In this document: positions 413-28,744 of the stretch, piece by piece
How the letters are laid out: the number at the start of each line of letters is the position of its first letter
How positions within the stretch are numbered: the stretch's first letter is position 1
NCBI GenBank assembly: GCA_001179505.1
Contig: CDMY01000644.1
Location: forward strand, 1 to 37,430
Direction of reading: 5' to 3'
Length of the DNA: 37,430 nt
Source: Vitrella brassicaformis CCMP3155
Taxonomy: Eukaryota > Protista > Chromerida
Program-made: the position numbers and the translations under genes
Notes under the pieces: model-generated
What the model was told of the DNA's origin: nothing
Seen by the model: only the letters and a program-made list of their open reading frames with translations
Database searches by the model: none

Positions 413-811
413 ATGGCACAAGTATTGCAGGAAGAGCTTGATCCCGACGCGCCACAGTTCGCCATGGAGGTCCCTCCGCCGCCAAAGGTCCCATGGAAGA
501 CAGTCGGCATGGTACAGCGCACAGCACACAAGGAAGGACAGACACAAGGTGACAAACCATCACGCCATGACCTCCATGTGTGTCTTGTTTGTTTTGTGTT
601 TCAGGCGCTCCTGCTCTTCACGATGGGCACGACGCTGCTGCTGATGGGCACGGGGACGTTCTTCCGCACCGGCGTGAGTGCGGCGACCCCTTTGTTGGTG
701 CTGGGGTCGATATGCTTCATCCCGGGGTCGTACTACACGTTCATGTTTATCCAGATCTTCAGGGGAGTGCCAGGGTACACCTACCTCGACATACCCAGCT
801 ATGACGACTGA
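413..811 (+). CDS. TMEM230: TMEM230/TMEM134-family small membrane protein (2 exons: 413-511, 605-811; ~101 aa)
   Basis: Removing a 93-nt GT-AG intron (512-604) gives MAQVLQEELDPDAPQFAMEVPPPPKVPWKTVGM/ALLLFTMGTTLLLMG...PLLVLGSICFIPGSYYTFMFIQIFRGVPGYTYLDIPSYDD. The K-x-PWK start, two TM helices, FIPG and G-Y-x-Y-x-DIP-x-x-DD tail are the family signature. An extra upstream exon cannot be excluded. Confidence 0.85.
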   Translation: MAQVLQEELDPDAPQFAMEVPPPPKVPWKTVGMVQRTAHKEGQTQGDKPSRHDLHVCLVCFVFQALLLFTMGTTLLLMGTGTFFRTGVSAATPLLVLGSICFIPGSYYTFMFIQIFRGVPGYTYLDIPSYDD

Positions 812-2923: not shown

Positions 2924-5252
2924 TCAGGTCTTGCACAGCTCATTGAAGAACTCCAGGTTGAAGTAGTAACGGCGATTCGCCGTGTAGTGCGGGCCGTCAT
3001 ACGCACCAGCCGGCAGACCAACACCAACACCACCACCAGCACCAGCAGGAGGGCCAAAATTGTGGGGGGCGGTGGCGGGGTCGCCCTGGCTGTTGCTGCT
3101 GGTGTTGCCGTCGGCTGCTGCTGCTGCTGTTGGGGCAGTTGAGGTGTCGGGATTGGCGCCGCGGGGCTCCTGTGTGGTTTGTGTGGGGGCGGTGGGTGGG
3201 CCGTCGATGGGGACATCATAGACGATGAACCTGAGAGGAGCATGAGCAGCAGAGAGAGAGAGAGAGAGGGGTGCGTGCATGTTTCTGTCGATCGACGACA
3301 GTGTCTGTCTCGAGTCATCGCCCACCTGACGGGCTGCTGCCCCCAGAAGCGTTTGAGTTCGATGTTGCCCACGCCGGGCACCTTCACCGTCCGCCACCGA
3401 ATCAGGTCGCAGTACATGCTGACATGCACACACACACGGTGATGCACAACAATTCCCATCCGCTGCCCCCTCTCCCATCCCGTCCCGACTCACACACCTG
3501 TAGAATGAGAAGGTGTACACGTGTTTGGTGTCGAAGAAGATCCGCGGGTCGCGACCCTCCTCCTCGCCCTCACCATCCCCAGCACCATCCCTCCGTCCGT
3601 GGTGGGCCACCACGGGACGCCTCAGGTCCACATTGACACCAGCACCAGCACCATTGTCGTCGGCGTCTTGCTGCTCCTCGGCATACGAGTAGTGGTGGGG
3701 TGAGGGCGGCAGCGAGTGGATGTTGTTGTGATGGTGGTGGTGATGGTGGGGCTTCCTGTGCGCGAAGGGGTTGTGCCGCCGCCCCCGGGGCAGGAACCGC
3801 TCGCGGCGAGCGATGCGCGCCTCGTCACTCTCAGGGATGTCCTGAAGACACCCACCACACGAACACAGCAAACACACGAAATGACAGATGGGGAGGGGAG
3901 GTGGCCAAAATGGGGAGGTGTCGGATACCGACCTGTCCGAGTGTGGGCGGGGGTTGGTCGAGCGGCGTGGCGGCCATCCTGTCGGCGTAGAAGGCCAGTG
4001 GGTAGACGATGTGCGGGCACTCGAGGTCACACACGCCGTCTTGCGATGCCGGGCTCTCGTTGCCGAACGACCAGTGGAACAGACGACCAACGGGAAACGT
4101 CTTGACGAAGGCCAAAATCAGACGACTCAAACCTGACACAAACAAAGTCGGGCACTTCACTCAGGTGTGTCGGCCTGGTGTGGTGTAGAGTGCGTGCGCA
4201 CCAGCCATGAGGAAGTCGAGGCTCATTTTCTTGTCGATTTCTCCGCCGAAGTAGACGATGCCCCTGGGCTGCTGCTTGAACCGGCCCTGCAGCTGGATCT
4301 CGAACATGCGCTGCCGGCCCCTGAAGTGGTACGCCCAGTAAGGGTCCAATGGGTCTGTCCGCACCAGCAGCAGAAAGCGACCCTGTGCACAGAGAGAGAG
4401 AGAGAGAGGCAATCCATCGGATGGGAAGGTCTGTATTGGGTGTGTGGCGGACTCACGGACCTTGAACCACTCATTCTCGAACTCGATGGGCACTCTGGCG
4501 TTGACGGGGCAATCGACCGGCCCCCCCGCCACAGCGAAGTTCCTCATCCTAATGTGAGGCAGCGACGGCGGCGCACTCATTGCCACCTTCCTAGTCACGG
4601 TGGAGGCCTCGCCCCCCTCCGCCACTGTGTGTGTCCGGCCGTGTGTGGGCGACTTGTCGGCCTCCTTGTCGTCGCCCTGCGACTCGCCCGACGAGCAAGA
4701 CACCGCCACCGAGTTGTTGTCGGCCGTCGTGGGCGAGCTGCCGCCGGTGTCCTTGCTGTTGACCGAGACCGACAGACTCGCCGCCCTCTCGCCCTCTAAA
4801 GCTGAAATGAGACTCGACGGGGACCCACCGCTGTCGCCGCTCTCGTATTGGCTCAGCGGGCGGCCGGGGGAGTGGGGTGCGCTGTTGTTGATGTTGGCAG
4901 TGACGGACGGGGTGGGCAGATGGACCTGCAGATGGGGGCGGGAGGAGGTCGTGAACGGGCTCTCTGAGTCGCTGCTGAACTCACGAGCTGCATCCACACG
5001 CACACACAAGGTGGACCAGCACGTCCATTTGGGATCCGTTCCCTCCACTCCCCTGTAGGTACCCGGCGGCGAGTAGTCTCCCTTGATGGGTCGTGGTGAG
5101 GGTGACATACACGTGCGACTGGGAGGGGAAAATGCATCGCCGGTCGATCTCCTGATGCCCGACGCGGTGACAGGTGCGTGAGGTCGGCAGGGACGCCGCG
5201 CGCGTGGCGATGGCGAACCGAGCGACATCGGTGAGGACGATTCTAATGCCAT
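2924..5252 (-). CDS. DUF1769-domain protein with long Ser/Pro-rich N-terminal region (~7 exons)
   Basis: Exons join in frame at GT-AG sites: PIEFENEWFK/GRFLLLVRTDP...HFRGRQRMFEIQLQGRFKQQPRGIVYFGGE.../LSRLILAFVK...HWSFG...PHIVYPL.../DIPES...YTFSFY/SMYCDLIRW...IELKRFWGQQPV/RFIVYD...RRYYFNLEF. These match motifs I recognise from DUF1769. ATG at 5252 is preferred; the frame stays open further upstream. Confidence 0.75.
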
Positions 5253-5743
5253 TGTCGCGCAGGGGGAAGCGCAGGGAGAGGGAAAAACGCGAGCAGGAGA
5301 GAATTGCCGATTAGCTCGCACATGAAGGAAGAGGTGAAGGGCTTGGGGGTGTGAGTGCCTGTTTGATGCTCCTGTTCATAGCTGAAGTCACTGCGTGTAC
5401 AAGCTGAGCGAGTCACGTACATGGCATGCATTGAAACACACACACGCACACACACACAAACACAGAGAGAGAGACAGAGTCAGAGTCAGTCGACGCTAGA
5501 GTCAGTCAGACGGGGGGAAAATCCAGCCGGTCGGCTGGGAATCTAATCCATCCCATCCCACTCACTCACCCACACGCCCCTCGTCCCCATCCATCCATCC
5601 ATCCGTCCACCACACCGCCCGCAACCACCACAAATACGAAAAAGTCCACATCAGCCACACACACATCCCTCCCGAGTGTGCCGAACATGGGATGGAAGGA
5701 CGGGGAGAGCAGTGCCGCGGAACAGATGGCTGTTGTCAGTGAG

Positions 5744-8392
5744 TCAGGCGGTCGTGGCGTTTGGTGCCTCTGCTGTCGGCTGCGTCGTGGCCTGGCCGTT
5801 GGCAGTGGCCACAGGCGCAGGCGCAGGCGCAGCGCTGGGTGCCGTGGGGACGGTTGGCACCGTGTATGTGGCTGTGGTGGCTGGGTATGCAGCAGCAGCG
5901 ACGCCGGCTGGGACGGTTGTCTGTTGCTGGTGGCCGGCCACTTGTGCTGCAGCCGCCTGCTGCTGCTGCTGTTGCTGCCCCGCCATGCCGTACATGTCAT
6001 ACATGCCCGCCCACGCACCATAACCGCCCGCACCGTAACCAAAGCTCTGAACACACACACGCGCAACACGCAACACATCCATCTCTCCTGCCGTCCAGTT
6101 TGTCTCTCTCTCTCCTTCGGCTTACCGCGTATGGGTTGTATGTGTATGGATCGACCGGCGTCGCCGTGGTGCCAGTGGCTGTGGCCGCCCCACCGCCACC
6201 CGCCCCCGCCACCCCCACCCCTCCCACAGCGGCGGGCATCTGCCCCACCTGACCCCACGCCTGCGCGCTGCCCCTCATCGGCCCATACCCCATGGAGCCC
6301 ATGGCAGCCATACCTGCCGCGGCGGGCATGCCTGCAGCCGCCATGCCGGCCATGGGTATGCCCCCCGCAGCGTAGGGCATGTAAGGCATCGTGCCGTAGG
6401 GCATGGCTGCTGCGCCGTACGGCATCATCATGGATGCGGTGGCGGGGCTGCTGTACGAGTAGTCGGTGTCGGGACGCTTGGGGATGCGCACGCCGCGGGA
6501 AATGAGATCGTGGATCTTGGAGTCGCGGTTGCTGCATTGCACATGAGATGAGTGAGAAGACGCCCATGGATCGGCCCCTGTGTGGTGTGTGTTGGGTTGC
6601 TTTGCTTGGTTACAGAGAGCGGGACGGCTGGTTTGAGAACTGCACGTCCAGCAACACGCCATTGAAATTGAAACCTGATGGCAAGGCAAGGCAAGGCAAG
6701 GCAAGATGGATGGATCGATGGACGGGACCAACGCACAGACACACACAATCAGCGCAATCAGCAAGGAAGCACACCCACTCTCCCGCGTATTGTATTGCTG
6801 CGCGTCTCATTGTCTGCGCCCAGGAGCTCACCGTTGAGTCCTTTGAGGGCCTTCTCCGCATCGCGGAGGTCGAAATACTGGACGAACTTCTCACTGACAC
6901 ATACACCCCACACGACACAACACAACTTTTACCTTACCACAGCCGTCCTTTCTATCTCCGCTTCTGCTGTGTGTGTGCGCTTACGCCTCTCTCTTTCTGT
7001 TGGGCGTGACTTTCTTGACGGCCCCGAAGGCGGTGAAGAGCTCCCGGTACTGCTCCACCGAGTTGATGTCGATGAAGTTGCGGTCCGCAGTGGCGGGACG
7101 CACAAACAATGTGCCCTGGAGACAGACAGCACAACACACACAGAGGAGATGTCGGTCGGTCGGTCGGTCGGTGTCCCAGGCTGACCTGGTTCTCCTCACG
7201 CCCCCCGTCAGGCCTTCCCGAAGAGAACTGCGCGTCTATCTGCACACATCACACACAGAGAGACAGACGACAAGCGAGGCAACACACGTGAGACAAGCAA
7301 GGTAGGAGTCAAAGGAGCACGAAGCAAGTCACTCCACTCATCCACTCACAAACACACGGGCAGACGGAATCGGGCGGTCAGGCATGGAGTGTCGTGCTCG
7401 GTGTCGTGTCTTGAGCTGGGCTGAGCTGTTCTCCTCCTGTCGATCGCCGTGTGTGCCCCCCACCGTGCCCTGCCCGTGTCATCAAGTACGTGCTGTGTCT
7501 GCCGTGCCGTGTGAGTGTTCCGCCATTCGACCCGTCAATTCACTCAGGCAGTGGACGTGCTCCGTGTTGTGTGTGTCGTGGGGTGTCGTGGCCGCTCGCT
7601 GTGGTGCTGTGCTGTGGTGTGCACAGTGAGTGCTACTTGACCTTCGATGTTGTTCAAGCAGCAAGGAAGGAAGAAAGGAACAAGGAGCGACTGCTCGACT
7701 TGACCCGACTCGACTCGACTCGACTCGATTGACGGCTGGGCTGTTCCGCTCCGTGGTGATGTCAGCTCAGCTCGCCACCCACAGCCACACGCATGCACCC
7801 TCTCCCCCCGGCAGATTCGCACATACCGATTTGCCGCCGAACTCCTTTGCCTTCAGACCCTTGCGGGCCTCCTCGGCTGCACGGAGGTCAAACTGAAGCA
7901 TCGAACGCCACACACACAAACAACTTGGCATGGGTGCGTGTCTGTGTCTGTGTGTCTCTCTGCGTGTGTGAGGTGGCTTACGTATTCGATGAAGGCCATG
8001 CCTTTGGTCGAGATGTTGATGAAGTTCTTGATGTCGCCCCACTCCTCGGCGGCCTTCCTGATCTCCTCGTCGCTCACGTCACTCGGCATCTTGCTCAGAC
8101 ACACTACTCGAGTCACAAACGCCTCCTACACACACACACGCACACACACCCATCACACAAGCACACGTACGTGTCAACCAACGCCCCTCCCCGACCATAT
8201 TGGGATCATCTGCAGGCACCACACACACACACGCGCAGACACAAGGAGCGTACACGTCATATCGGCGGATCCCCTTCCTCTCGCTCGTTGGGCCTTACCC
8301 CAGGTGAGTGGCTGCGATGGTGCAGCGGAGTCAGTCGTGCCGCCCGCAGCAGCATCTGCCGGGCGGTCATACGGACCTGTACGGTAGCTCAT
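5744..8392 (-). CDS. Mei2-like (RRM1-RRM2 type) RNA-binding protein with low-complexity M/G/Y/A/Q C-terminus (~10 exons)
   Basis: Spliced product contains TRVVCLSKMPSDVSDEEIRKAAEEWGDIK...KGMAFIEY/FDLRAAEEARKGL...KS/IDAQFS...EENQ/GTLFVRP...YRELFTAFGAVKKV...EKFVQYFDLRDAEKALKGLNG. The (F/Y)DxRxA helix motif in both RRMs and the NQGTL linker resemble Mei2-like RRM1/RRM2. All junctions are GT-AG and phase-consistent. Confidence 0.75.
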
Positions 8393-8862: not shown

Positions 8863-11800
8863 ATGACGACGGCGTCCGACCTGAACAACCCCTTCAGTCG
8901 GGCGGAGCTCAAGCGGGTCAAGGAGATCCAGTTCGGGGTGCTCTCGCCGCAACAACTGGTACGCAAACACAGCCTGGAGCCTATTCCTCCTTGACTGACG
9001 TCTGTGCAATTGTTTTCTCTCTGATGGTGTCATTCGTTGATTCACTTCACTCACTGATGATTGGCTGGTTGCTTCATTCATTCAGCAAGCGATGTCGGTG
9101 TGCAAGGTGGAGCACGCCGAGATGTACGAGAAGGGTCTGCCGAAGCGTGGCGGCCTGCAGGACCCCCGCATGGGCACCATTGACTTCCGCGTGGCGTGTG
9201 AGACCTGCGGCATGAGCCAGTACGAGTGCCCAGGACACTTCGGCCACCTCGAGCTCGCCAAACCCATGTACCTCCCCGGTCAGTGACACACCCAACCACC
9301 GACCCACAGCACCCCATCCAAAACGCACCTTCTCTGCGTGTTGTGTCTGTCGGTGTCTGTGGGTGTCTGTCAGGGTACATCAAGACGGTGCTGAAGGTGC
9401 TGCGGTGCGTGTGCTACAGCTGCAGCCGTATCTTGGTCAACCACGGCGACGCCAAGGTCAAGCGAATCCTCAAAGGGCGGCTGGCGGGCCCCAAGTTCAA
9501 CAAGGAGCGGCTCGCGTACGTCATGAAACTCGCCAACAGCGTCAAGAAGTGCGATTTCCAGGAGGACACGACAGAGGAGAACCAGGCGTCCGGGCTGCAG
9601 TCGGGCGGGTGCGGGAGCCGCCAGCCCAAGTACAGCCGCACGGGGGTGCAGATCGTGCTGGAGTGGAAAAAGGACGACAAAGACATGGAGGACGAACCGG
9701 ACCCTGGCGACGACGAGGAACGGGTAAGCGAAGCGGGCCGGGCGTCCAAGGGGTGCGTGTGGTGTGGTGTGGTGTGAATGTCTGTGTGTGGGACTGGGTT
9801 GGTGTAGGACTCCAAGAGGAACCTCACTGCCGAGGAGGCGCACGCCATTCTGAAAAGGATATCGCCGTAAGCTGCCCAGATACACGCTTGGCGACCACCA
9901 AGGGCAAATACACCTGTGCTTCCATCTGTGTGTCAGTGAGGACATGGAGACGCTCGGCTTCGACCCCGTGCGGTCGCAGCCTGCCTGGATGATCTGCAGC
10001 ATTCTCCCAATACCGCCGCCCGCCGTCAGGCCATCCGTCCTGGTCAGTCAGTCAGTCAACACAACACACCCAACGCACACACCACACACAACACACACAC
10101 GCGTCCATCCATCCATCCATGCATCGTGTGTGTGTCTGCTGATGGTTCACACACAGTTTGGTGGGTCTGATCGGTCTGAGGATGACCTGACCAACAAGCT
10201 CAACGACATTGTCAAGATCAACGCTGTCGTCAAGAAACAGGAAAACAGCGGCGCACCCGTGCACATTGTCAATGGTGAGCTGAGCTCACCCTCCAGCACA
10301 CGACACGGAGCGAGATAGAGGGAGGCATGTGCGTGTATGTGTTGCTGTGGTTGGTCTCAGAGTACGCCAAGACGCTGCAGTGGCACATCATCACGCTCAT
10401 TGACAACGGCATCCCAGGCCTTCCTGTGGCCGCAACACGATCCAAGAAACCCATCAAGGTCACTCACTCCACCGCCACACGCGCCAACAAAGGCAGACCA
10501 CATTCCCTTCTCTCGTGCATGCATCAGGCAATCCGAGCGCGTCTGAAGGGCAAGGAAGGCCGGCTCCGTGGCAACCTGATGGGCAAGCGCTGCGACTTTT
10601 CGGCGCGTACGGTCATCACGGGCGACCCTAACCTGGCCATCGACCAGGTGGGTGTGCCGCGGTCGATCGCCATGAACCTCACATTCCCCGAGACCGTCAC
10701 CGCTCACAACATACATGAGCTCAAGGTCTGTCAGCACACACACAGACACACGGGGAGAAAGAGCCGAAGCGTTCACGTGTGTGTGTTGTGCAGCGGTTGG
10801 TGGCCAACGGCCCGAATGAGTGGCCCGGTGCGCGGTTCATCGTGAGGGACGACGGCACGAGATACGACCTCAGACACACCAGGGGGTCGGCGGAGCAGTC
10901 GCTGGAGTACGGCTACAAGGTGGAGCGGCACATGCGCGACGATGATCTGGTGCTATTCAACCGGCAGCCCTCACTGCACAAAATGTCCATCATGGGACAC
11001 AGGTCCGTCTCCGTCTCCGTCCGTCCATCTGCCCACACAGCCATTGATGTGTGTGTGTGTGTGCGTGTGGATGGGTGTGTGGATGGCATGTTTGCAGGGT
11101 GAAGGTACTGCCGTACTCGACGTTCCGTCTCAATCTGTCCGTGACGCCGCCGTACAACGCCGATTTCGATGGCGATGAGATGAACATGCACCTGGCACAG
11201 ACACATGAGACACGGTAGGTGGGCTGGGATGGGTGGCTGGGCACATCGATGTGTGGATGGATGGATTGATGTGCAGGAGTGAGATCAAGCACCTGATGCA
11301 GGTGCCCAGGCAGATCGTCTCCCCTCAGGGCAACAAACCCGTCATGGGCATCATTCAGGCACGCACGCCCTCACAGACCCACAGAGAGAGAGAAAGATAG
11401 AGACTGCTATATCATTTGTTCTCTGTGTCTCTACGTGTGCAGGATTCCTTGCTGGGCATCAGCAAGTTCACCCGGCGCGACACGTTCCTCGACAAGGCGA
11501 TGCTCATGAACCTTCTCATGTGGCTGCCCGACTGGGACGGAAATATACCCACACCCGCCATACTCAAGTATACCCATAACACCCAAACACTCCCAATCCC
11601 ATCCCAATCTGTGCGCGTGGTGGGTGCGGTGTATGGCGTCTGTGTGTGTGCCTGTTGTATGTGCAGGCCGGAGTGTCTGTGGACGGCCAAGCAGGTGATA
11701 TCTCTGCTGCTGCAGGACGAGCGCATCAATCTGCAGCGGCCGGGCAACAGGGCCGGAGAGAAAGAAAACCCAAACTTCTCGGCGTCTGACGGACACGTAC

Positions 11801-14800
11801 TCACTCACCCATCTGTCCGATGTGTCTGTGTACACAGACGACACCCGGCATTTTCTCCCTCTCTGTCTGTGTGTGTGTGTGTGTGTGTGTGGTGCAGGTG
11901 ATCATCCGCAAGGGTGAGCATCTGGCCGGTGTGATCGACAAGCGCACGACCGGGTCGTCCAGCGGCAGTCTGGTGCACATCCTCTTCCACGAGTGCGGAC
12001 CCGAAAAGACCAATTACTACCTCACATACGCCCAAAAGGTGCGTGAGGGCGCGCACACCCTCTCACCCTCACACCCCTCTGTCTCTCTCACTCACAATAC
12101 ACTGTGTGTGTGTGTGCAGGTGGTGAACTACTGGCTGCTGAACTACGGTTTCTCTGTCGGTGTGGCTGACATCATCCCTGCTGACACGACCGTACGCAAG
12201 TGCACGGCGTGCGACACATCCGGCTGCGCTGCGTGCATATGACATATACGATAGATGTGCACATGATGTGTGTGCTGTGTGGTCTGGTGTGGTGTGTGTG
12301 TGTAGGTGTCGTCTGTGGGTGAGGCGCTGAACAAGTCCAAGGAGGAGGTCAAGAAACTCGTCGGCGAGGCCCAGACCGGCAAACTCAAAACACAGCCCGG
12401 TACCCCCTCCCGCCTCCCCCTCCCTCCTCCCCCTCCCCCCCCACCNNNNNNNNNNNNNNNNNNNNNNNNNNNNNNNNNNNNNNNNNNNNNNNNNNNNNNN
12501 NNNNNNNNNNNNNNNNNNNNNNNNNNNNNNNNNNNNNNNNNNNNNNNNNNNNNNNNNNNNNNNNNNNNNNNNNNNNNNNNNNNNNNNNNNNNNNNNNNNN
12601 NNNNNNNNNNNNNNNNNNNNNNNNNNNNNNNNNNNNNNNNNNNNNNNNNNNNNNNNNNNNNNNNNNNNNNNNNNNNNNNNNNNNNNNNNNNNNNNNNNNN
12701 NNNNNNNNNNNNNNNNNNNNNNNNNNNNNNNNNNNNNNNNNNNNNCCCTCCCCCCCCACCCCTCTCCGTATTTGTGTCTTCATATCATGTGTGTGCAGGC
12801 AAAACCATGTTCGAGTCGTTCGAGAGTCAGGTCAATCAGGAGCTCAACAAAGCCCGCGACACCTCCGGCAAGATCGCGTCCGAGTCTTTGGACGAGAAGA
12901 ACAACATCATCGCGATGGTCTCGGCCGGCTCCAAGGGCAGCAGCATCAACATCTCCCAGATCATGGCCTGCGTCGGGCAGCAGAACGTCGAGGGCAAGCG
13001 CATCCCCTTCGGCTTCGCCAACCGCACCCTCCCGCACTTCACAAAGGACGACTACGGACCTGAGAGCAGAGGATTTGTGGAGAACTCTTACCTCAGCGGA
13101 CTCACCCCCCAGGAGTTCTTCTTTCACGCCATGGGCGGGCGAGAGGGTATCATCGACACGGCCTGCAAGACCTCCGAAACGGGCTACATCCAGCGCCGCC
13201 TCATCAAGGCCATGGAGGATGTGCAGGTGCAGTACGACCGCACCGTCCGCAACTCTCTGGGCAACGTCATCCAGTTCCTCTACGGCGAGGACGGCATGGC
13301 GGGGGAGTTCATCGAGGACCAGGTGCTCGACTTCATGAAGATGAACAACGACAAGCTCGAGGAGACCTACAGGCACGACTATGAGCTGCCACCGGACGAC
13401 AGGGGCATGGAGCGGCCAAATGACAACTACGGCACGGGGTGGCTGTCGGACCGCGTCAGGTGCGCGCGTGTGTGTGTGTGGTTGGATGGATGGATGGATG
13501 GGTGCATCTCTCTCTCTGTGTCTGTCTGTGCGTGTGTGGTGTGCACTGCAGGCAGCAGCTGATAGCCAAAAAGGACGACAGCGATCCCCCGCTCAACGAC
13601 CTGGAGGGCATCAACAGTCTTGAGAAGGAGCTCAAAGACATCAAGGAGGCCAAACACAGACTGTGCACGTACGTCACGTCAGACACCAAGCCACCCCGCC
13701 ACCCACACACATATGAGTGTGTGTGTGTTTTGTCCGTCGTTCTGTCCGTCCGTCTGTGTGTCGTCAGTGAGTATTTCAAGGACGGCGAGGCGAAGCAGCA
13801 CCTGCCCATCAACATAGAGCGCATCATCGAAAACGCCAGGAACCAGTTCCCAAGGAGAGGGGTACGGGGTAACACACCCGCACACACATACACACACACC
13901 ACCCTCCACACACAGGCGCTCATCTCTGTGTGTCTTGTGTCGTGTGTGTAGAGTCTGAATGACCCCCACAACGAGCGCTTCAGCCCAGTGACCATCTGCC
14001 GGGCGGTCGACAAGCTGCTCGAAGAGCTCAAAGTCGTCCAGGTAACTCACCCAGCCCCACCCAAATGCAACACAACACTCCGAACAGCACGCAACACACA
14101 TGTATGTGTGTCTGTATGTGTGTATGGGTGGCAGGGTGATGACGAGATCACGCAGGAGATCCAGCAGAACGCCCGCGGGCTGCTGACGTGCCATCTGCGG
14201 GCGGCCCTGGGCAGCCGCAAACTCATGGAGAAGGACCAGCTCACCGAACAGGCCTTCGAGTGCGTCCTGGGGGCCGTCAGGGAGCAGTTCTTCAAGTCGC
14301 TCGCGCACCCTGGCGAAGTGGTGCGCACATTGACGCACACACACAGATACACACACGGACAGGCGCATCGACTCTCTCTCTGTCTCTGTTTCTGCCTCTG
14401 TGTGCAGGTGGGCGCGTTGGCGGCTCAGTCCATCGGGGAGCCGGCCACTCAGATGACGCTCAACACGTTCCACTTCGCCGGTGTGTCGGCCAAGAACGTG
14501 ACGCTCGGTGTGCCCCGGCTGCGGGAGCTCATCAACGTGGCCAAGACCGTCAAGACCCCCGGGCTGACCGTCTTCCTCAAGCCCGAGTACGTCCATGACC
14601 GCGATAAGGTGCGGGAGGTGTCGACCAACCTCGAGATGTGCAACCTGGACAAGCTCATCTCGTACTGGACCATCATCTACGACCCGGACATCAAATCTTC
14701 CATCACCGAGGTATGGACACCCATGGCGGCCCCTCCCTCTCAACAGACAAGGAGTGTGTGTGTGTGTGTGTGTCGAATGGATGGATGGCTGCAGGACAGG

Positions 14801-17423
14801 GAGTGGGTGGAGGAGTATTTCGACTGGGCTGACGCCGAGAGGGGCGAAGAGGTGGTCTCCCCGTGGGTCCTGCGGGTCGTCCTCGACAGCAAAGTCTTCA
14901 ACGACAAACGACTCGAAATGCAACAGGTCGGTCCGTGCACTCAGTCTTTGCCCCCTTCCCCACACCCACCCACACCCCGACCCCCTTCTCTCTCTGTCAA
15001 TCATCAGATCGGTGAGCGTGTTACGGAGGAGTTCGGTTACAACTTCGTGAGCGTCATCCAGACGGACGACAACGCCGAGGAGCTCGTGATGCGCATTCGG
15101 CTGAAGCCGTCGCCCGAGGGGGAGGAGGCCGAAAACGAGGAGGAGGTCACGCTGCGGCAGATCGCTGAGGCGCTCCCAATGGTGCGCATCAAGGGCATCG
15201 TCGATATCAAGAAGGTCTACATGAGGGAGGAGAACAAAGTCACATACCTCGAGAACGGTACGTCCGCCACACACACAGACACACAGACAGGGAACAGGGC
15301 GCTTGCTTATCCCCCTGTGTGTGTATGGTGTGTGTCAGGGTCGTTCATGCGCACCAAGGAGTGGGTGATGGACACCGATGGCGTCAATCTCCCGGCCGTG
15401 CTTGCAGCCGACGACGTCGACCACACACGAACCATTTCCAACAGCATCGTTGAAGTGGCAGAGGTGCGCCATTGACCATACACAGATGGACGATTGCCAC
15501 CTCTCTCTGAGTCTCTCCCTCTCTGTGTGAATGTGTGTATGCGTGTGTGTGTGTGTGTGTGCGTGTGTGTGTAGACGTTGGGCATCGAGGCGGTGCGTGC
15601 CTCCCTGTTGAATGAGGTCCGCCGTGTGATATCCTTCGACGGCTCCTACGTCAACTACCGACACTTAGCTGTCCTGTGCGACATCATGACGGCCCGAGGG
15701 ACGCTGACGTCCATCACGCGGCACGGCATCAACCGCATCGATCGGGGGCCGATGATGAAGTGCTCGTTTGAGGAGACCGTCGAGATCCTCGTCGATGCGG
15801 CCATGTTCGCCGAGACCGACGAGATGAAGGGCATCACCGAGAACATCATGCTCGGACAACTCTGCAGATTCGGTACGGGGGAAGGCAGACACAACACTTC
15901 GTTCAGACACATGTGGATCGCTGTGTGGTGTGTGGTGTGTTCAGGCACCGGTGCGTTCGACATCATGATTGACGAGGACGGCGTGGCGGCGTGCACAGGC
16001 ACTGCCGAGGGCCAGGACCTTCTGGCGGCCGACGCAGCCGACTTCCTTCACGACAACTACCTCGGCGCTCCCGCAGCGGCCCTCCACTCCCTCCAGTCGA
16101 TGTCAGGCCTCTTCTCCCCCGCCCAGCCGCAGTCACCCGACCTCCCACACACCCTCACCAGCCCCATGCAGGCCGCCTTCATGAACGAGCTGCCCCAGAC
16201 CAAGAAGGGCCAGTACAGCGACGTCAACGCCCTCTTCTCTCCCGAGCCGGGCGGAGGCGAGCGTTTCATGGACCAGGGCCCGATGAGCCCGGCCTTCCAG
16301 GCTCCAATGTCGCCGCAATACCGGCCGGGGGCAGGGGCCGGGCCGCTCTCGCCCATCTACCAGGCGCCCTTCAGCCCCGCGCCACTCAGCCCCGCCTACC
16401 GTCCTGCAGGTGCTGCCGCGGCGGCTGGTCGTGCTGGACCCATGTCACGTCGGCCGTTCTCGCCCAGCTACTCACCCACGTCGCCGTCGTATGGCGCGCC
16501 GATGAGCCCCCGGCCGATGGGTGCGCAGGCGACCACACCCGGCTACGGCATGCGGGCGATGACGCCGGGCTACCAGGTGGGAGGCCGCATGCTCAGCCCG
16601 GGGTACTCGCCCACATCGCCCTCTGGCGTTCCCGGCTACAATCCCGCCAGCCCGGCATACAACCGCATGGGAGGGTACCGGCCCACGTCGCCCGCATACG
16701 CGCCTCTGTCGCCTGGAGGGTATCGTCCGACGTCGCCTGGCCATGCTCCGCTGTCGCCCGGCTACCGACCGCCGCTGTCGCCAGGGTACATCCAGTCTGG
16801 GCGGAGGGGAGGTGCGGGTGCTGCAGGGCCGGTGTCGCCGGGGTACTCACCCAGCTCGCCTGCATACACGCCTCAGTCACCCAACTATGGACCACAACCA
16901 CGTAAGGGAAGCGAGCATCCGTGTATGTGTCTACCGGTGTCACTTCTCTGTGTGTGTGATGGTGTTTGCTGTGTCGCCAGGTGCTGCTGCGTACTCGCCG
17001 ACGTCGCCCAAGTACTCTCCGTCATCCCCCGCCTACAGCCCTCGTCAGTCGGAGCCGCAGGACGCCAGCCCCAAGGCGGCCGTGTCGTCGCCCAGCCAGT
17101 CGTATGAGCTGGCCAGCCCCTCTGAGGAGCCGCCAAGCGCTCAGCAGCCACGGTCAGGCGGCCAGATCAGGCCCGATGCAGGCAGCCCCGAATCGCCCGC
17201 ATACTCGGAAGAAGGTACGACAGACAGACGGACATCAGCAGCACGTCTTGGGAGACGTGTGTGTGTTGACGTGATGTCGGTGTCAACTTCAGGCGGCCCG
17301 CACAGTCCCCACCATGGTGGCCCTCAGAGTCCTGGCGCGATGCCGTTCGGTGCGAGCCCCCCCGACCCCGCCCACCCCGACCCCGCCGAGAGACCTGTGC
17401 CTGAAGATGAGACGGAAGAGTGA
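8863..17423 (+). CDS. RPB1: DNA-directed RNA polymerase II largest subunit (29 exons as spliced by eye)
   Basis: Zn motif CETC...[29 protein letters not shown], catalytic NADFDGD (11156-11176), bridge helix [17 protein letters not shown], trigger loop [18 protein letters not shown]...YVNYRHL, and YSPTSPS-like CTD repeats that identify Pol II. First exon 8863-8958, last exon 17293-17423. Confidence 0.99.
11359..11442 (+). other. Non-canonical GC-AG intron in RPB1
   Basis: The conserved PVMGIIQ|DSLLG junction requires donor CAG|GCACGC and acceptor GTGCAG|GAT. No GT alternative preserves the conserved sequence. Confidence 0.85.
12446..12745. other. Assembly gap (300 N) inside an RPB1 intron
   Basis: The N run is flanked by C-rich tracts. 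Exons on either side join as KLKTQP|GKTMFESFE, contiguous with known RPB1 sequence, so no coding sequence appears lost. Confidence 0.97.
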
Positions 17424-17955
17424 TGCATTCACGCAACAGCGACATGATGGTCGCTGGACGGCTGACCTGTGGTGGTTGGGACAAGTGCTGTGTCTCGGTT
17501 TGTACGTGCGTCCTTGTCCCGTGAGGACAGCTATCAGTTTGACATACGTTAACTCATAGCGCAACGGCAGGCAGAGTCTGTGTGTGTCTGTGCCAGTGAG
17601 GCATCTTTATGAAGACAGATGCAGATGCATGCGTTCACGGATCAAAATGATGGCGGCTTGGTGGACGGGTGGACGGGAATGGGCATGAGTGTGTGTGCTG
17701 ACATGGCTCGATTGCCGAAGTATCCATTGACACAACTGTCTGCCTGTCTGTCTGTCTGGTTAGTCATCATCTTTCGCGCATCCAGCCATGTCTTGACATC
17801 GTCGAGGGCCCCTTTTTTTCCCCCTCTTGTTAAGTTTACAATACACGTTAAGCCAATCCGCGATTTGAATCTTTCTTTCACGCTTTCTTTCAATCTCTTT
17901 CTTTCTCTCGAGCGGAGCACCGAAACCAGCACCCCTTCCTCTCTCCCCAGCAGTG

Positions 17956-18648
17956 ATGATGCGCGTGTTTGGTCTGTTGGTCCTGTTGGCCCTCGCCGGC
18001 GTCGTACACTGCCAGCTCCTCGGCCCAGAGCCCGAGGAACGTGGCGAATCTGAATGTGCCGGGGCGGACCCGGACTGTCAGCCGCTAGCGGCTGGAGGTG
18101 AGGTCACACGAATGCCACCACCATCGTCCACGCAGAGTCTCTGCCCGTGTCTCTGCGTGTCTGTGTGCAGCTGCACGTTTCGTTCATCCTACGCTGGCGC
18201 GGACGAGCGGAACCAACTACAGTGGGCACTTAGGCAGGCGTCGTCTGTGTGCACGGGCTCAAGCCATTGCTCCTGTTCTGTGTGCGTGTCTCTGTGCGTG
18301 TGTGTGTTCTGCAGCTGCGGGTGCTGAGCGTGTGATTTGGAACTGCGACGGAGACGAGGAGTGCGCCGCAGCCGAAGTGACGTGTACGTCGCGCGAATCT
18401 GTCTGAACTCCGATGGACTGATTCATTCCATCTTTTGCTCTTCCTCTCCAATGTATGCAGACACCGGTTTTCCAGGCGGAGGAAATCCCGTGTCTTGGTG
18501 CGCAAATGAGAATTTCTTTGGCATTGGGACTGATTGCGGTGAAGACGCTGCCGATGTAAGACGAAAGGAATCGAAGCGGGAGAACACTTTTCTCCCTTCT
18601 TGGTTGACAGGCATTTTGCGTTTCCTTGGTTGGCAAGGGGTTCACTGA
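17956..18648 (+). CDS. Small putatively secreted Cys-containing protein (4 exons, ~150 aa)
   Basis: Signal-peptide-like MMRVFGLLVLLALAGVVHC. Three phase-1 introns (donors 18098 GTGAGG, GTGGGC, GTACGT; CAG acceptors) join the exons to end ...SWCANENFFGIGTDCGEDAADVRRKESKRENTFLPSWLTGILRFLGWQGVH*. No family recognised. Confidence 0.6.
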
Positions 18649-19805: not shown

Positions 19806-21304
19806 TTATGTGAGTTGATTGCTGCTGCTGTCCTCATCCATCTCATCGACACTCCTGTGAGACAGACAGACAGACAGCCACGTGTGTACTCATGAGTGCC
19901 CCCATCCCTCCCCTCCGCCCTCAACTCACTGGTCGTCCTCCGTGTGTTGTTGTTGCTGCTCGTCATCGTCGTCAATCATATCGCCATCATGCTCCTCTTC
20001 TCCCCAGTCGCCGCCCATGCAATCCTCCACGCCGTCCTGCACACACACAGACCACACACATTGATGACATGGCATGTGTGCGCGCGTGTGCCTCCTTCCA
20101 CCTCATCCAGATCGTCGCCGTCCCCGCCGCCCTCCAGGCCGTCCTCAGCCATACCGTCCTGCACACACACACACAACAAGGAATCATCACATGCATGTGA
20201 CTGTCTGCCCCTTCTTCCCTGACCTCATCGATGTCATCCTCCTCATCTAGGTCGTCGTCGCTCGAGCCATCATCATCAGATGACTCCTCGCCCCACACCG
20301 CACCGGGCGGCCCCCTCTGGTCCATCCCCTCCCACCCAGATATCACCTTCACCACACACTGACCTCCCCCCGCCCCGCCCACCACCACACGGCCATCAAA
20401 CACACACTCGAATGGCTTGCCATTGCCGAATCCACTGTCGATGTCAGGCAGCTTGTAGTGCAGCGCCTCCTCACACCGAATAAGGTGGATCACGTCACGG
20501 AGGCCATACACGATGCCCTCGTCTACCTGCCCGCCCTCTTCCTCTCCCTGGCTGTCTGATGTGTCCGTGTGTGTGATGTGTGGTGTGACGAAGGCAGTGT
20601 GGCGGAACAGACGGCGCCGCACAGACGGGCTGGCCACATTGCAGACACGCGAGACGAAGAAAGACAGTGCCGCGTTGAGCCGCCGCCCGAGTGGCGTGCG
20701 GGCTGAGAAGGGCAGAGAGGGGGGCTCTATCTTCGAGGCAATCTGACTGCACAACACACCCACACCGAACACAGAGTGGGAAGCCGACAGGGCAGACACA
20801 GTGCGCAGAGGGGCGAGGGACGTGTTGATGAAGCGCATGGCGTGTGTGGGGACAGAGCGATTGAGATAGTCGTGATACACCGACAAAATGCGGCGCTTCT
20901 GTCTGGCTGTCGTGCGAAAGTGTGTGAGTGCTCTGTCTACCGATGCCCCCAGGTGAATCAGATGGTGTGCAGCAGTGTCGTGGCCTCCCCTCACAAACTC
21001 GACAAGGGGTGGCAGCGACCCACCACCGTCTACGTGAGCTCCTGCCTCACGCACCAGAAGTGAAATGACATCGACATCCCAGTGAGCACAAGGGAGGGTA
21101 AACACATCGGCCCTCGCTCCCTGCTGCCTCACCAGCCAATACATCACAGCCCTGTTCCGCGCCTCTGCGGCAACATTTAGCGCATCTCTGCCTCTGTACC
21201 CCTCTACCACCCCCCGTCCCATCCCCTCGACCAGCTTCTCGAGGATTGCGATGTGGGGGTCTGTCTGGCCATCGTGCGCCGCATCCTGCTGCTGCTGCTG
21301 GTGC

Positions 21305-21336
<32 letters not shown>

Positions 21337-22012: not shown

Positions 22013-22262
22013 CGCCAGATCTCACCGGCCGCTGCTGGTGCACCTCACAGTCCGTCCACGGCGGGATGGGTCACCATGGCAAAGCTTCCTGACTTGCGTG
22101 TGTGGCAGTGACACACCTCGCCGCTATGTCTTCCAACCTGACACACCATGCACCGACAGGCAAGGGCACATGAATGCATGCAGGCTTGCCAGATCCGTGC
22201 GTTCCTTTCCTTCCCATCGCATGCGAATGCTTACCGTCGTCATGGTGGTTGGTTGGTTATGT

Positions 22263-22358: not shown

Positions 22359-24720
22359 ATGGCTGCCGCAGCGGCTGCCAGCGGGGCAGCCGAGAAGCGG
22401 AAGCGGCCGAACGGCGGTGATGGCGATGAGGATCAGTGCGGCCATCTGGATGAGGCCATCGAGCAGTCCCTTTCCATCGCTAGTGCGCTGCAGGAGATCA
22501 AAAATGGCCTTACGCAGCGAGAGCGGGCCATGGGCGGGACGGCGGACACAAGCGAGCCATGCGTAAGAGGAGATCAGATGGGATGAGAGGCAGGGAATCC
22601 ATGAATGCGGCTGTGTGCGTTGCTGTGCGTGTGCGTCAGGCCGAGCTCATGCGTGACATCTTGTCGTTCAATGTGGCCGGGGAGATCGTGAAAGCCCGGC
22701 GGTCCACTCTGTGCGCCGTCAAGGGCACCGTTATGGCACTCCTGTTCTCGGGCCGCTTCGACAACGCCTTCATTCGTGACAATGACAAGCGCATTTTTCT
22801 CCAGTCGTTCCCCGATGCTTTCACGTGGTAGGCAGACATAGCAGCATGACTGTGGCCGTGGGTGGATCTCAGGTGTGTGTGTGCGTGCGCATTGTTTTTC
22901 AGGTTGGTAGGGCAGCTCATCACATACGTCGGCGAGCAGACCATCGATAGCATCGTCATACCGCCTTCGAGACAGAACGATACGCCATTCAAGTCAGCCA
23001 CACCATTGACAGACGGCAGGCTGCCTGTCTGTGTTGCCGTTGATAGCATGATGTGGTCTGGTGTGGTTGGTCTCATTTAGGTATTGGGTAGAGTTGTTAA
23101 TGTCCGACCCAGCGGCCAAGTGCAAGCGGCGTGCGAGCCGTGTGCAGATCCCCCCACTCACACAAGACCAGCAGGAGGAGCAGCAGCAGGGGACGGGCGG
23201 CGAGCAGCAGCAGCAGCAGAAGAGAGATGCTGAGGACCTCTCTGTGGAGCTGACCAGTATGATCAGGAGGGCCAAGGCTGACAGGGATGCCCAGATGGAG
23301 CGCCTCGAGGCCATCAGGCCGCTGCTCAAGACTGGCAACGTAGAGGACGATGCGGTGAGGTGAACACAGCTTGGCAGGGGAAGGCCAACTCGACGACGCG
23401 CTCTGTGTGTCATTTCCATGTTGCCAGTTGGTGTCGATTGAGGTGTCTGGCGCCGTCGTGACAGTAACGAAGGGTGTGGCGACATCGCTCGGCGAGGACT
23501 CGACCTTCGCAAACCGATTCCTCAAGTGAGCAGCTGCCGTCACTGCACACACACGCAGACATCTCCATCGGATGCCATCCTGCCTGCGTGTGTGTCAGGT
23601 ATGACCGCAGTAGCCATGAGGTAGATCCAGCGTACGTGCGGCGCATAGTGGACGTGGTGGCGCGCGCCCACATGAAGGCGGCGGCAGTCAAGGCGGGCGA
23701 TGTGCAGAGGGCGGTGGGGGAGATGGCCATCAAGGGATACCGACACGCACTCACCATGTAAGTGGACACTGGTAATGCATTGCCAGTACCCTGATGGCTG
23801 ACTGTGTCTGTATGTGTGTTAGGTATGGTTTGGATAGCGATCGCTATTTGGGTCCGGCTAATGCCCTGCTCACCACGGAGCACCTGCAGAAGATGCGCGA
23901 GTGGGTCGAGCGTCGGCCAGTCGCGCCCAGCAGCATCCCCGAGTGTGTCAGGGAACCGGTCATGCGCATTTACAAGTGAGGGAGGGAGGGAGCAGCAAGG
24001 CGGAAGACATTCTCACTCACTCATGTGTCTGTCTGTCTGTCTGTGTGTGTGTGTGTGTGTGTCATGTGTGTCGTGTCAGGGCGTCGGTGGATGGGTGGAA
24101 GTGGCTGGATCTCCTCGATGCCGTCAAGGGCCACTCCCCCCTGCTGCTCATCTCCAAGGTGGCCGACAGCAATGAGCTCTTCGCCATCCTCATCGATGGT
24201 CGCATCGAGGTCACGGGGGCGGCCGAGACCAAGCACGACATCAAATCGCACACCTTCAAGCTGCAGGGGACGGACAGCCACCCACACGTGGGCTATATGG
24301 GCTGGCGGCCCAACTTGTACATCGCGGGCACACAGGTGGGTACTCATTCGAATGAGCCATTCAGGCAGGCGGTCATGGTGATGGTCTCCTCTCCATTCAT
24401 GTGTGCAGGAGAGAGTCCCCGAGCTCATCGATTTCTCATCGCCCGACTCCCAGGCGACGGCCGTCCTCACCATCGCGTGCTTCAATTTCGGCATCCGTCC
24501 GGCCGTGGACCAGATCGGTGCCCCAGCAGCAGCCAGCGACGAGACCATGAAGCGGTCTCAGGGGCACATGCTGGATCAGCCCAACGAGTGGCGGCAGTGG
24601 GAGCGGCCGAGCGTCAGGCCGAGCGACCACGGCTGGGGGGATGATAGAGCGTTTCTGCCTGTCTCAGTGCAGGGATGGCACTTCAACCTCTCTGAGTTGG
24701 AGGTGTACAAATTGGCGTGA
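22359..24720 (+). CDS. KCTD-type BTB/POZ (one clear, one degenerate) plus C-terminal TLDc-like domain protein (~8 exons)
   Basis: DILSFNVAGEIVKARRSTL...LLFSGRFD...DKRIFL is KCTD-type BTB. VSIEVSGAVVTVTK...DSTFANRFLK looks like a second degenerate BTB. RIYKASVDGW...VKGHSPLLLI and the terminal FNLSELEVYKLA* match TLDc. All junctions are GT-AG and in phase. Confidence 0.8.
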
Positions 24721-26341: not shown

Positions 26342-28744
26342 ATGGCTGGTCTCCATGCTGGTCATCGCACCAAGGGCGACGACGGCACCCGCTGGGGCGT
26401 CCTTGCTCTCGCCTGCCTCATCATGATTGGATGCTACTACAGGCACGGATGCATCCACCATGATCTGTTGGCATCTCTCGTTCATCTCTGGCTGTGCTGT
26501 GTGTGTGCAGCTTCGACAACCCTGCGGCTTTGAACGAGTCGCTGCTGGACCACTTCAGCCCTCAGCTGTCAGTGTCTGAGTTCGAGTTCTACTTCAATCT
26601 CCTCTACTCGGTCTATGCGCTGCCCAACATCTTCCTGCCGCTGCTCTTCGGATACTTCATCGACATCATGGGCGTCAGGGCCGCTCTCGTCATCCTCAAC
26701 GCATTCCTGGTCGTCGGACAGGTCAGAATGGTCACCTGGCCGCCATTCTCCATGTGTGTGTTGGATGGATGGATGGATGTGTGTGGTGGCGTCGTGTGTG
26801 GCGTTGTTTGGGCTGCTTTGCAGGCGGTGGTGTGTCTGGGGTGTTACGTTGTGAACATGCCCCTGATGCTCACTGGCCGAGTGTGCTTCGGGCTGGGCGG
26901 CGAGAGCCTCAACGTGGCCGCCACCGTCCTGCTCATGCAGTACTTCAAGGAGCGAGAGGTCAGTCATCCGACACACAAATGAAATATCATGCAGATGCTC
27001 TTCTCTTCTGCACCAGATGGCCATGGCGCTGGGGATGAATCTGTGTGTGGCGCGGGGCGGGAGTGTGCTCAATGACCTCATCTCGCCGGTCATCGCCACA
27101 CGGCTGGGTGTGACGTCGGCCCTCCTCTTCAGCGAGGTGCTGCTCATCCTGTGCATGCTCGGCTCCGTGGGGCTCGTCATCATAGACGCCAGAGTCGAGC
27201 GGGACACTGACAGACACAACGCAGAGATCGCCGCCAGCGTGAGCACTCATGGCGCCACCGAGACGACAGTCGCCAGCACAACAACGACGGTGAGAGAGGA
27301 GGGATGTGACAATTGCATGAGTTCATCCGCGTTCCGTATCCGCTCATCCGGTCAACCAGAGTTCCCATTCTCACCGCATGTCGTTCATGGAGGCGATGCG
27401 GTTCGGCCCGGTGTATTGGGTCGCGTCGATGGTGTGTCTGGTCCTGTACTGCGCCATCCTGCCGTTCAACAACATCGCCTCGGCCTTCCTCGTCGAGGAA
27501 TGGTACTACGACCAGCCACCCGCACAGGTAGATGACCATCACACACAACACAACACGACGAAACACACGGGGAAGGCGGGATCTTCGGTGTGCCTTGTTG
27601 TGGTATCAGGCTCGTGAGCATGCGGGTCAGGTGATGAGCATCATCTTCGCCTTCTCGGCAGTGGCGTCACCGATCTTCGGGATCGTATCCGACAAGGTGC
27701 CAATGAATGGACGGCGAGGACAAAACACACAGACATGCACTGGTGAATTGTCCGTCGACGGGTGTGTTGTGTCATTAGGTGGGGAAGCGTGTCGGTTTCT
27801 GCTTTTGGTCGTCTCTGCTGGTCGGCCTGGCCCACTACCTGCTGCTGCACGTCACACCTGAGGTGTGAGACACACACGAGTGCTAGGATAATGTCGACCG
27901 TGTCTCATCTCTCTTTCTGGTCAGATCCCGATGATACTGCTGGGCCTCGGATACACTGTCTTTGCCACCGTCAGCCGACAGCCAGACATGCTCAACAATC
28001 GACTTAATGCCTGTGTCATTATTTCCAGGTCATCTGGCCCTGTTTGGGTCTTGCTGTCGACGAGCACCATGCAGGCACGGCGTACGGCTTCGCCACTGCA
28101 TTGCAGAACGCGGGGCTCTTCCTAGTGCCGCTCCAAGTCGCCTACCTCAGAGCCAAAACAGGTGGGGGTGGGTTTGCACATGCAGGCAGACAGACATGGG
28201 AGCAGGCGGCCCAGTTGACCTCTATCTGGGTGGTGTGCAGGTCGCTATGTGGTGGTGGAGCACATGTTCATCGCCCTGTCGTGTCTGGCGGCTTTTTTCT
28301 GTGTGTGGCTCTACTACCTCGACTCCAAACACGGCAGCGTCCTCGAGAGCGTCGAGGTGAGCGGGGGAGACACTCACGCATGAGGAGAGACACACATGGT
28401 GTGTGCCTGCGAATGTGTGGCTTCAGCACGTCGAGTGTGAGAAGGAGCCCATCTATCGTGAGGATCTGCCGCACTCGGACAGCACTCCCACCCAGGACGC
28501 CACGCCACACGCAGCCAGCACACCCGGTGAGGGCAACGGCGACGACCTGAAGGCCAAGAGGACATCCATCTTCGGCACCCAACTCAACAGCCTCACCAGA
28601 CGAAACGTATGTGACCATGGTCGGATGGACGGATGGATGGATTGGCGGCCGTGTCTGTGTGTGGTGCGTCAGGCTGACGGCGGTACGGGCGGCGAGGATG
28701 GTGTCTCGTGCGTCACGTGCCACCAGACCGTCAAGGTGCAGTGA
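26342..28744 (+). CDS. MFSD1: Major facilitator superfamily transporter, MFSD1-like (multi-exon)
   Basis: RWGVLALACLIMIGCYYS/FDNPAAL...FNLLYSVYALPNIFLPLLFGYFID, GRVCFGLGGESL, MALGMNLCVARGGSVLN, ILPFNNIAS, GTAYGFATALQNAGL are typical of MFSD1-like proteins. The frame of the final exon is less certain. Confidence 0.88.
26443..26510 (+). other. Non-canonical GC-AG intron in the MFS gene
   Basis: The conserved YYS-FDNP motif needs TAC AG|GCACGG...GTGCAG|C TTC GAC. No GT donor is available at this position. Confidence 0.8.

Follow-up and report, generated by a model that had tools for sequence, protein, structure and literature searches.

Opposed composition of the two halves of short introns in the RPB1 gene of Vitrella brassicaformis, and its bearing on hairpin-guided splicing

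Many introns in a stretch of 37,430 nucleotides of Vitrella brassicaformis CCMP3155 (contig CDMY01000644.1, referred to here as the window) begin with A/C-rich sequence and end with G/T-rich sequence, and the two halves are able to pair. The question raised by this locus is whether that pairing is what has been selected. A first-pass annotation had marked positions 8959-17292, almost exactly the span of one gene, RPB1 (the largest subunit of RNA polymerase II), and had proposed a structure-guided definition of its introns. The results presented here favor another explanation, to which we give a probability of roughly 55%: short introns (~60-130 nt) would be defined by two independent, position-specific composition signals on the RNA, and the complementarity of the halves would be a by-product.

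The RPB1 gene was located at 8863..17423 on the + strand, with the start ATG at 8863, the stop codon at 17421-17423, 29 exons and 28 introns. Protein searches used one exon at a time; the exon at 12801-13457 (219 residues) matched 8679 relatives, and its best named matches were the apicomplexan RPB1 proteins of Gregarina niphandrodes and Plasmodium inui. The exon translations contained the motifs of the family, including the catalytic NADFDGD. Residues 1-1778 of Gregarina RPB1 were collinear with the locus in tblastn alignments, the domains followed in the order of RPB1, and the reading frames were open across all introns. YSPTSP-like heptads at 16400-17100 marked the C-terminal heptad region. 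The C-terminal domain (CTD; 16240-17423) is degenerate, with the heptads dispersed between Pro/Gly/Arg-rich spacers; intron 27 falls inside it, and the tail of the protein is acidic (...EDETEE). A metagenome scan did not find the RPB1 locus of a close relative (top identity ~77%).

Fifteen RPB1 introns were confirmed by spliced transcript contigs, and the remainder were supported by reading frame and homology. Transcript-contig mapping covered 8900-12445. Spliced contigs were present in three runs from three studies (X1, X6 and X7), and the unspliced genomic form was present in a DNA run (X3). Between 8959 and 12305, the spliced contigs showed 14 GT..AG joints, and a further joint was resolved by frame as GC..AG. 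This further joint belongs to intron 11, which the transcript contigs thus confirm; all other RPB1 introns have a GT donor (27 GT-AG, one GC-AG). Intron 13 was supported by contig pieces at 11667-11798 and 11902-12036. Beyond the contigs, the frame was tracked through every admissible GT..AG pair, guided by collinear tblastn alignment with apicomplexan RPB1. The use of tblastn with full-length RPB1 relatives as a finder of intron borders was rejected: this GC-rich DNA has few stop codons, so that the alignments passed through the introns without showing any borders. The introns at 14042-14134 and 14321-14407, as read in the first-pass annotation, agreed exactly with the frame-checked ones. The RPB1 introns are ordinary U2-type spliceosomal introns that are removed from the mRNA. 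Apart from intron 16, which contains an assembly gap, they were 62-127 nt long, with a median of ~86 nt.

Intron 16 was excluded from all statistics, and 27 RPB1 introns were counted. Thirteen introns of other genes were added. One of these (512..604) was read by eye, and 12 came from a hidden Markov model (HMM) trained on RPB1, followed by refinement of splice sites and frame. When the HMM was benchmarked in RPB1, 17 of the 18 islands scoring at least 7 coincided exactly with a known intron, and the remaining island merged two adjacent introns. The model misses weakly biased genes or assigns them to the wrong strand, and only the 12 islands with high refinement scores were kept. The sample from this one window thus comprised 40 introns, of which 15 were confirmed by RNA, 12 were supported by frame and homology, and 13 were predicted.

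The A/C-rich 5' half and G/T-rich 3' half reported in the first-pass annotation proved to be a strong feature of these introns. The 5' half exceeded the 3' half in (A+C)-(G+T) skew in 25 of the 27 RPB1 introns (Wilcoxon p=1e-7), and the ratio of AC/CA to GT/TG dinucleotides was 318:112 in the 5' halves and 77:478 in the 3' halves. The same polarity was observed in all 13 predicted introns of other genes, seven of which lie on the minus strand. GT..AG pseudo-introns of 60-130 nt, drawn as a control from three intergenic regions and two long exons, had a mean half difference of -0.10 to +0.04 compared to 0.69 in the real introns, and at most 0.5% of them reached 0.69. Polarity is therefore a property of introns and not of DNA in general. 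Its occurrence in intergenic DNA had been named beforehand as an observation that would speak against structure-guided splicing; it was absent from the three intergenic regions. Counts of A/C-to-G/T switches by block adjacency and by sliding windows were too noisy and were confounded by unannotated genes, and the pseudo-intron controls were used instead. The (TG)-rich end had also been reported to follow the sense strand in minus-strand genes. This was indeed seen, and all six predicted minus-strand introns within 3419..7981 were polarised in the sense orientation; however, because (AC)n...(GT)n reads the same after reverse complementation, such agreement is automatic and adds no independent evidence.

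Profiles anchored at the splice sites revealed the anatomy of the two halves. Positions +11 to +40 were U-poor (T 7-15%, A ~30%, C ~35%), and positions -30 to -6 were A-poor (A 5-9%, T 40-42%, G 34-39%, C 13-20%). An ordinary polypyrimidine tract was lacking: positions -28 to -4 contained T 42%, G 35%, C 15% and A 7%, so that pyrimidines made up only 58%. The (TG)n-rich end had been described as standing in the place of a pyrimidine tract, and GTGTGT was found at most 50 nt from the 3' splice site in 28 of the 40 introns, compared to ACACAC at most 50 nt from the 5' splice site in 13. The repeat units at the front were AC, GACA, CCAT, CACACCCT and GA, and those at the back were TG, TGTC, GGAT, GTGTG and CT; these different units all followed one orientation rule, U-poor in front and A-poor behind. 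AG was strongly excluded from the 3' zone, where only 6 of the 101 A's at -33 to -3 preceded G, compared to 33.9 expected (p=5e-11), and the nearest AG upstream of the acceptor lay at a median distance of 45 nt. The remaining A's of this zone stood mostly in GAU, CAU or UAU contexts, which would fit the usual branch-site pattern. In the 5' zone, GT was not avoided beyond composition (47 observed, 41.3 expected), and avoidance of decoy donors was rejected as the reason for the U depletion of the 5' half. Three intronic simple repeats, at 9757-9776 (GTGTG), 11248-11271 (GGAT) and 12103-12120 (TG), are shared by dozens of unrelated contigs of the DNA run or form the ends of such contigs, so these short units must recur widely across the genome.

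Pairing between the halves was examined by folding in silico. Four perfect complements quoted in the first-pass annotation, among them 10091-10101 with 10125-10135 (11 bp) and 15269-15278 with 15315-15324 (10 bp), were all found in place. Chimeras were then compared with the native introns, each chimera joining a 5' half to the 3' half of another intron. In minimum free energy (MFE), duplex energy and number of cross-half pairs, the chimeras were as good as or better than the native introns. The permutation p of this half-swap was ~0.7 for all 40 introns and ~0.3 for RPB1 alone, and the own partner of a 5' half ranked at the 53rd percentile. The longest perfect complement averaged 6.0 nt in native introns and 6.3 nt in chimeras, ~9% of which reached 10 bp; matches of 10-11 bp are thus to be expected whenever a front with AC is joined to a back with GT.

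The composition of the two halves was likewise not coupled in the manner expected of partners. In the (AC)m-(GT)n structured introns of teleosts and lamprey, the criterion is ACACAC at most 50 nt from the 5' splice site together with GTGTGT at most 50 nt from the 3' splice site (Lin et al. 2016, Genome Res, PMC4691745, Methods). Both motifs were present in a subset of 7 of the 40 introns (5 of 27 in RPB1). Co-enrichment of the two tracts was not found in this small sample (n=40; 7 observed, 9.1 expected, odds ratio 0.33, p=0.15). The AC content of the 5' half and the GT content of the 3' half were negatively correlated (Spearman -0.40). The greatest weight lies with the complement-specific correlations, which were negative as well (C of the 5' half with G of the 3' half, -0.34; G with C, -0.51; A with T, -0.06), and like-with-like correlations were positive (C with C, +0.46; G with G, +0.42). 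In a diverged paralogous pair of introns (copy A, near 20037-20101, and 34090-34159), the AC part was retained and the length of the GT tract was very different. No Rfam family was found anywhere in the window; therefore, intron-borne snoRNAs do not explain any structure. These results do not support the hairpin as a selected feature, and there is no sign that the intron ends evolved to pair.

We therefore consider how two separate signals could produce such introns. The main signal would be the last ~30 nt, U/G-rich and A-depleted and often composed of (UG)n, (UGUC)n or (GGAU)n, which would take the place of the polypyrimidine tract and may be read by the 3' splice-site machinery. The UG tract would double as a strict AG-exclusion zone, and the first AG past the branch region would therefore serve as the acceptor; candidate branch points may be placed from the GAU or CAU contexts of the few A's in the tract, and the branch A is predicted 20-45 nt from the acceptor, where A/C-rich sequence gives way to U/G-rich sequence. 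The other signal would be the A/C-rich, U-poor 5' half with its (AC)n, (GACA)n, (CCAU)n or (GA)n, which could serve as a protein-binding site or set the front apart from the U-rich back. Microsatellite slippage would supply the sequence, and a repeat would pass selection at the RNA level only if its orientation suits the half in which it lies. As the rule "no U" is the complement of the rule "no A", the halves would be complementary automatically. Hairpins may form in a minority of introns, but pairing would not be what is selected.

Several observations weigh against the account by two separate signals or favor the fish-like alternative, in which a generic CA-rich tract pairs with a UG-rich one at the other end of the intron and the pairing itself is selected. 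Such pairing would define the intron, juxtapose the splice sites and lessen the dependence on U2AF65 and a pyrimidine tract; it would be an independent development in this alga and would involve a large share of its introns. Native introns were more stable than their dinucleotide shuffles (mean -23.8 compared to -21.2 kcal/mol, mean z -0.9, p=2e-4), with z below -2 in 8 of 40, and they were also more stable than within-half shuffles (z -0.8). That the halves can pair, as had been claimed, was borne out by 17.5 cross-half base pairs compared to 12.8 in shuffles, and more of the 3' tract was paired than in the shuffles. The layout is that of the teleost introns, the share of introns with both motifs (7/40) exceeds the maximum of 2.29% in fish (PMC4691745), and the ordinary pyrimidine tract is lacking. 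Furthermore, a generic zipper needs no partner-specific fit, so the chimera test is not decisive against it. Two separate signals leave the U depletion of the 5' half unexplained, and the sample is small: 40 introns from one window, only 15 of them confirmed by RNA and 13 of them predictions.

Nevertheless, we regard selected pairing as unlikely. Co-enrichment, the defining statistic in fish, was missing, and the complement-specific correlations were negative. Many 5' halves are purine-rich and unable to pair with (UG)n, for example those of 6047-6125 and 23976-24079, and two-thirds of the introns have no AC run. The graph distance between the 5' and 3' splice sites in the MFE structures predicted in silico was no shorter than in shuffles (0.15 of intron length compared to 0.16, p=0.35), and bridging would be of little importance at ~85 nt. 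The mean gain in stability was just ~2.5 kcal/mol, and the chimeras folded as well as the native introns. It is distinctly unlikely that a generic CA/UG zipper serves to recognise most of the alga's introns, with pairing of the U-poor 5' half and the UG tract replacing recognition of a polypyrimidine tract by U2AF65. To read the pattern as an independent invention of the fish mechanism, at about ten times its frequency in fish and in very short introns, appears just as doubtful. Of the structure-guided definition proposed by the first-pass annotation, the polarity, the TG end and the capacity to pair thus hold, whereas pairing as the selected function is not supported by the chimeras, the splice-site distance, the co-enrichment or the correlations. 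The comparison of folding with controls that it had called for gave a small excess over dinucleotide shuffles but none over half-swapped chimeras.

The tracts might instead carry no positive signal at all, if microsatellites expand freely in introns and are purged wherever they create harmful decoys, which would be AG close to the acceptor and U-rich or GU elements close to the donor. In that case, polarity would be a passive footprint of purifying selection. The strong AG exclusion, the simple-repeat nature of the tracts with their varying unit and length, and the fast length change between paralogous introns are consistent with such a filter. However, the C depletion and the U and G enrichment of the 3' zone far exceed what avoidance of AG needs, GT is not specifically avoided in the 5' zone, and (AC)n, which has neither GT nor AG, is largely missing from the last 30 nt. 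Some 3' signal must also exist, because the pyrimidine tract is lacking. We place the filter alone below selected pairing as such and above its extension to most introns, and consider it unlikely. An origin at the DNA level, from hairpin or inverted-repeat mobile elements (introners, or miniature inverted-repeat transposable elements, MITEs, as in Amoebophrya) or from some DNA mechanism generating inverted microsatellites, is suggested by the self-complementarity of AC...GT, since a DNA palindrome would look alike on both strands, and by the hairpin introners known in another alveolate (PMC7789003). Nevertheless, blastn among the introns gave low-complexity matches and one paralogue pair and no intron families, terminal inverted repeats were 5.0 nt long compared to 5.0 nt in chimeras, boundary direct repeats averaged 2.2 nt, the splice sites were canonical, and polarity was absent from intergenic DNA. 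The introner or MITE origin was rejected on the lack of families, terminal inverted repeats and boundary duplications and on the canonical splice sites, and a DNA-level origin of either kind is very improbable. A poly(UG) (pUG) quadruplex was also tried as a general explanation and rejected, because only 1-3 introns have a (UG) run near 12 units.

Ordinary U2-type introns have an AG-free tract between the branch region and the acceptor, a CAG or TAG acceptor, and a polypyrimidine tract. The introns studied here share the AG-free tract upstream of the acceptor and the CAG or TAG acceptor itself, but their tract is U/G rather than U/C, and the AG-free zone takes up about half of the intron. Intronic CA-repeat enhancers bound by hnRNP L and UG-repeat elements bound by TDP-43 are vertebrate modulators of single introns. 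In these elements, CA- and UG-rich tracts near splice sites act via proteins and independently of each other, as the statistics obtained here favor; unlike the present pattern, they modulate single introns and do not form the general intron layout of a genome. The (GT)16 acceptor of apoA-II is an example of a UG repeat (cited in PMC4691745).

The teleost and lamprey introns resemble those of the window in layout: AC-type repeats closely follow the 5' splice site, and GT-type repeats closely precede the 3' splice site, at the position of the pyrimidine tract. They also share canonical GT-AG ends, halves that are complementary in principle, and native folds somewhat more stable than dinucleotide shuffles. 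The fish class makes up 0.09-2.29% of introns, is long, has repeats that co-occur above independence, and its function was demonstrated by mutagenesis and U2AF2 depletion (PMC4691745). In contrast, the introns of the window are tenfold shorter (~85 nt), most of them carry the pattern, and the pattern is a compositional polarity (no U, then no A) instead of pure AC/GT repeats. Here the GT part also far outnumbers the AC part, and the two show no co-occurrence or a negative one. The first-pass annotation did not know of structure-guided introns described in alveolates, which is not quite how matters stand: in Amoebophrya, introner elements, themselves of another type, have inverted repeats and form hairpins (Farhat et al. 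2021, BMC Biol, PMC7789003). In that alveolate also, such an intron has complementary 5' and 3' ends, and a hairpin is predicted to join the exon ends. The Amoebophrya introners are family-like repeats with terminal inverted repeats of 8-20 nt, direct repeats of 3-5 nt and mostly non-canonical splice sites (PMC7789003), whereas the introns studied here are canonical, unique and low-complexity, without terminal inverted or direct repeats. A literature search on polypyrimidine tracts and intron microsatellite polarity did not find a published description of this intron architecture in Vitrella or other chromerids.

The coordinates of the introns are listed in Table 1. The run of N's at 12446-12745 lies wholly within intron 16. 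The exon before the gap stops at 12399 in phase 1, the next exon begins at 12799, and the split codon encodes Gly; the Gregarina RPB1 alignment extends up to residue 726 on the left of the gap and continues from residue 726 on the right. The coding sequence of RPB1 is therefore continuous and in frame across the gap. The match of one transcript contig ends at 12400, and its 92 further letters do not lie on 12401-12445. Both flanks of the gap (12403-12445 and 12746-12765) consist of C-rich low-complexity sequence of CCCCCT type, which is the likely cause of the assembly break.

Table 1. Introns of RPB1 and of other genes in the window. Skew is (A+C)-(G+T), 5' half / 3' half.
Feature	Position	Strand	Length (nt)	Skew	Evidence	Remarks
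Intron 1	8959..9085	+	127	-0.05 / -0.25	RNA joint	GT..AG; weak polarity
Intron 2	9279..9373	+	95	+0.77 / -0.58	RNA joint	strong polarity; fold z -3.5
Intron 3	9724..9807	+	84	-0.41 / -0.73	RNA joint	G/T-rich all along
Intron 4	9867..9936	+	70	+0.27 / -0.07	RNA joint	
Intron 5	10043..10156	+	114		RNA joint	contains the 11-bp complement; fold z -0.03
Intron 6	10275..10360	+	86	+0.26 / -0.63	RNA joint	
Intron 7	10459..10527	+	69	+0.60 / +0.13	RNA joint	
Intron 8	10726..10793	+	68	+0.52 / -0.38	RNA joint	fold z -2.5
Intron 9	11003..11097	+	95	+0.12 / -0.77	RNA joint	
Intron 10	11215..11276	+	62		RNA joint	G/T-rich all along, (GGAT)n
Intron 11	11359..11442	+	84		RNA joint	GC..AG; joint 11355/11440, 4-nt ambiguity, settled by frame
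Intron 12	11568..11666	+	99	+0.47 / -0.69	RNA joint	
Intron 13	11797..11897	+	101		frame	also supported by contig pieces; terminal (TG) run of ~12-14 units (Tandem Repeats Finder, TRF)
Intron 14	12039..12119	+	81	+0.39 / -0.17	RNA joint	
Intron 15	12192..12305	+	114	+0.04 / -0.62	RNA joint	
Intron 16	12400..12798	+			frame + Gregarina homology	holds assembly gap; C-rich either side; ends TGTGTGCAG
Intron 17	13460..13551	+	92		frame + homology	G/T-rich all along; polarity exception 1 of 2
Intron 18	13669..13767	+	99	+0.51 / -0.56	frame	
Intron 19	13862..13951	+	90	+0.70 / -0.30	frame	fold z -2.9
Intron 20	14042..14134	+	93	+0.71 / -0.33	frame	coordinates as in first-pass annotation
Intron 21	14321..14407	+	87	+0.44 / -0.23	frame	coordinates as in first-pass annotation
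Intron 22	14711..14794	+	84	+0.41 / -0.68	frame	
Intron 23	14927..15007	+	81	+0.33 / +0.39	frame	C-rich, unpolarised; polarity exception 2 of 2
Intron 24	15258..15338	+	81	+0.50 / -0.44	frame	contains the 10-bp complement
Intron 25	15464..15574	+	111	+0.14 / -0.73	frame	long (TG)n
Intron 26	15873..15944	+	72	+0.23 / -0.74	frame	
Intron 27	16902..16980	+	79	-0.14 / -0.60	frame	within CTD
Intron 28	17215..17292	+	78	+0.12 / -0.47	frame	
Intron of the window's first gene	512..604	+		+0.48 / -0.38	read by eye	polarised
Six predicted introns within 3419..7981	3419-3497, 3842-3932, 4383-4460, 6047-6125, 6894-6984, 7893-7981	-			HMM + refinement	
Predicted intron	20159..20223	-			predicted	paralogous to 33968-34035
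Predicted intron	23976..24079	+			predicted	long (TG)n
Predicted intron	26959..27016	+	58		predicted	
Predicted intron	28357..28426	+	70		predicted	
Predicted intron	33968..34035	+			predicted	96% identity over 51 nt with 20159-20223(-)
Predicted intron	34090..34159	+			predicted	paralogue in copy A (near 20037-20101): AC part kept, GT tract much longer

Further observations were made outside RPB1. An inverted duplication of ~2 kb has its copies at 20116-22031 (-) and 32161-34078 (+), ~10 kb apart; the identity over eight aligned arms is 72-93%. The duplication includes a paralogous acidic (D/E-rich) gene. One of its intron pairs is 96% identical over 51 nt, and the other has diverged mainly in the GT tract. 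The gene from 17955 (17955-18800, +) starts with a signal peptide that is clearly recognizable (MMRVFGLLVLLALAGVVHC...), and its introns, such as the one at ~18099-18171, are short and polarised; the gene lies on the + strand, although the HMM called it minus. After the stop codon of the window's first gene (808-810), the + strand of 810-1400 is G/T-rich for ~200 nt and then A/C-rich for ~300 nt. This arrangement would fit two convergent 3' untranslated regions, each G/U-rich in sense, and G/U-richness may mark the 3' ends of transcripts.

Gene finders for this genome should score intron polarity, and hairpins predicted in introns of this kind should not be taken as evidence of structure-guided splicing without a half-swap control. 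If the UG-rich, A-free tract is a general substitute for the polypyrimidine tract, these introns would be a clean example from nature of intron signals built jointly by microsatellite slippage and orientation-specific selection. On the same condition, recognition of the 3' splice site, by U2AF65 or another factor, would differ in sequence preference in this relative of the apicomplexan parasites.

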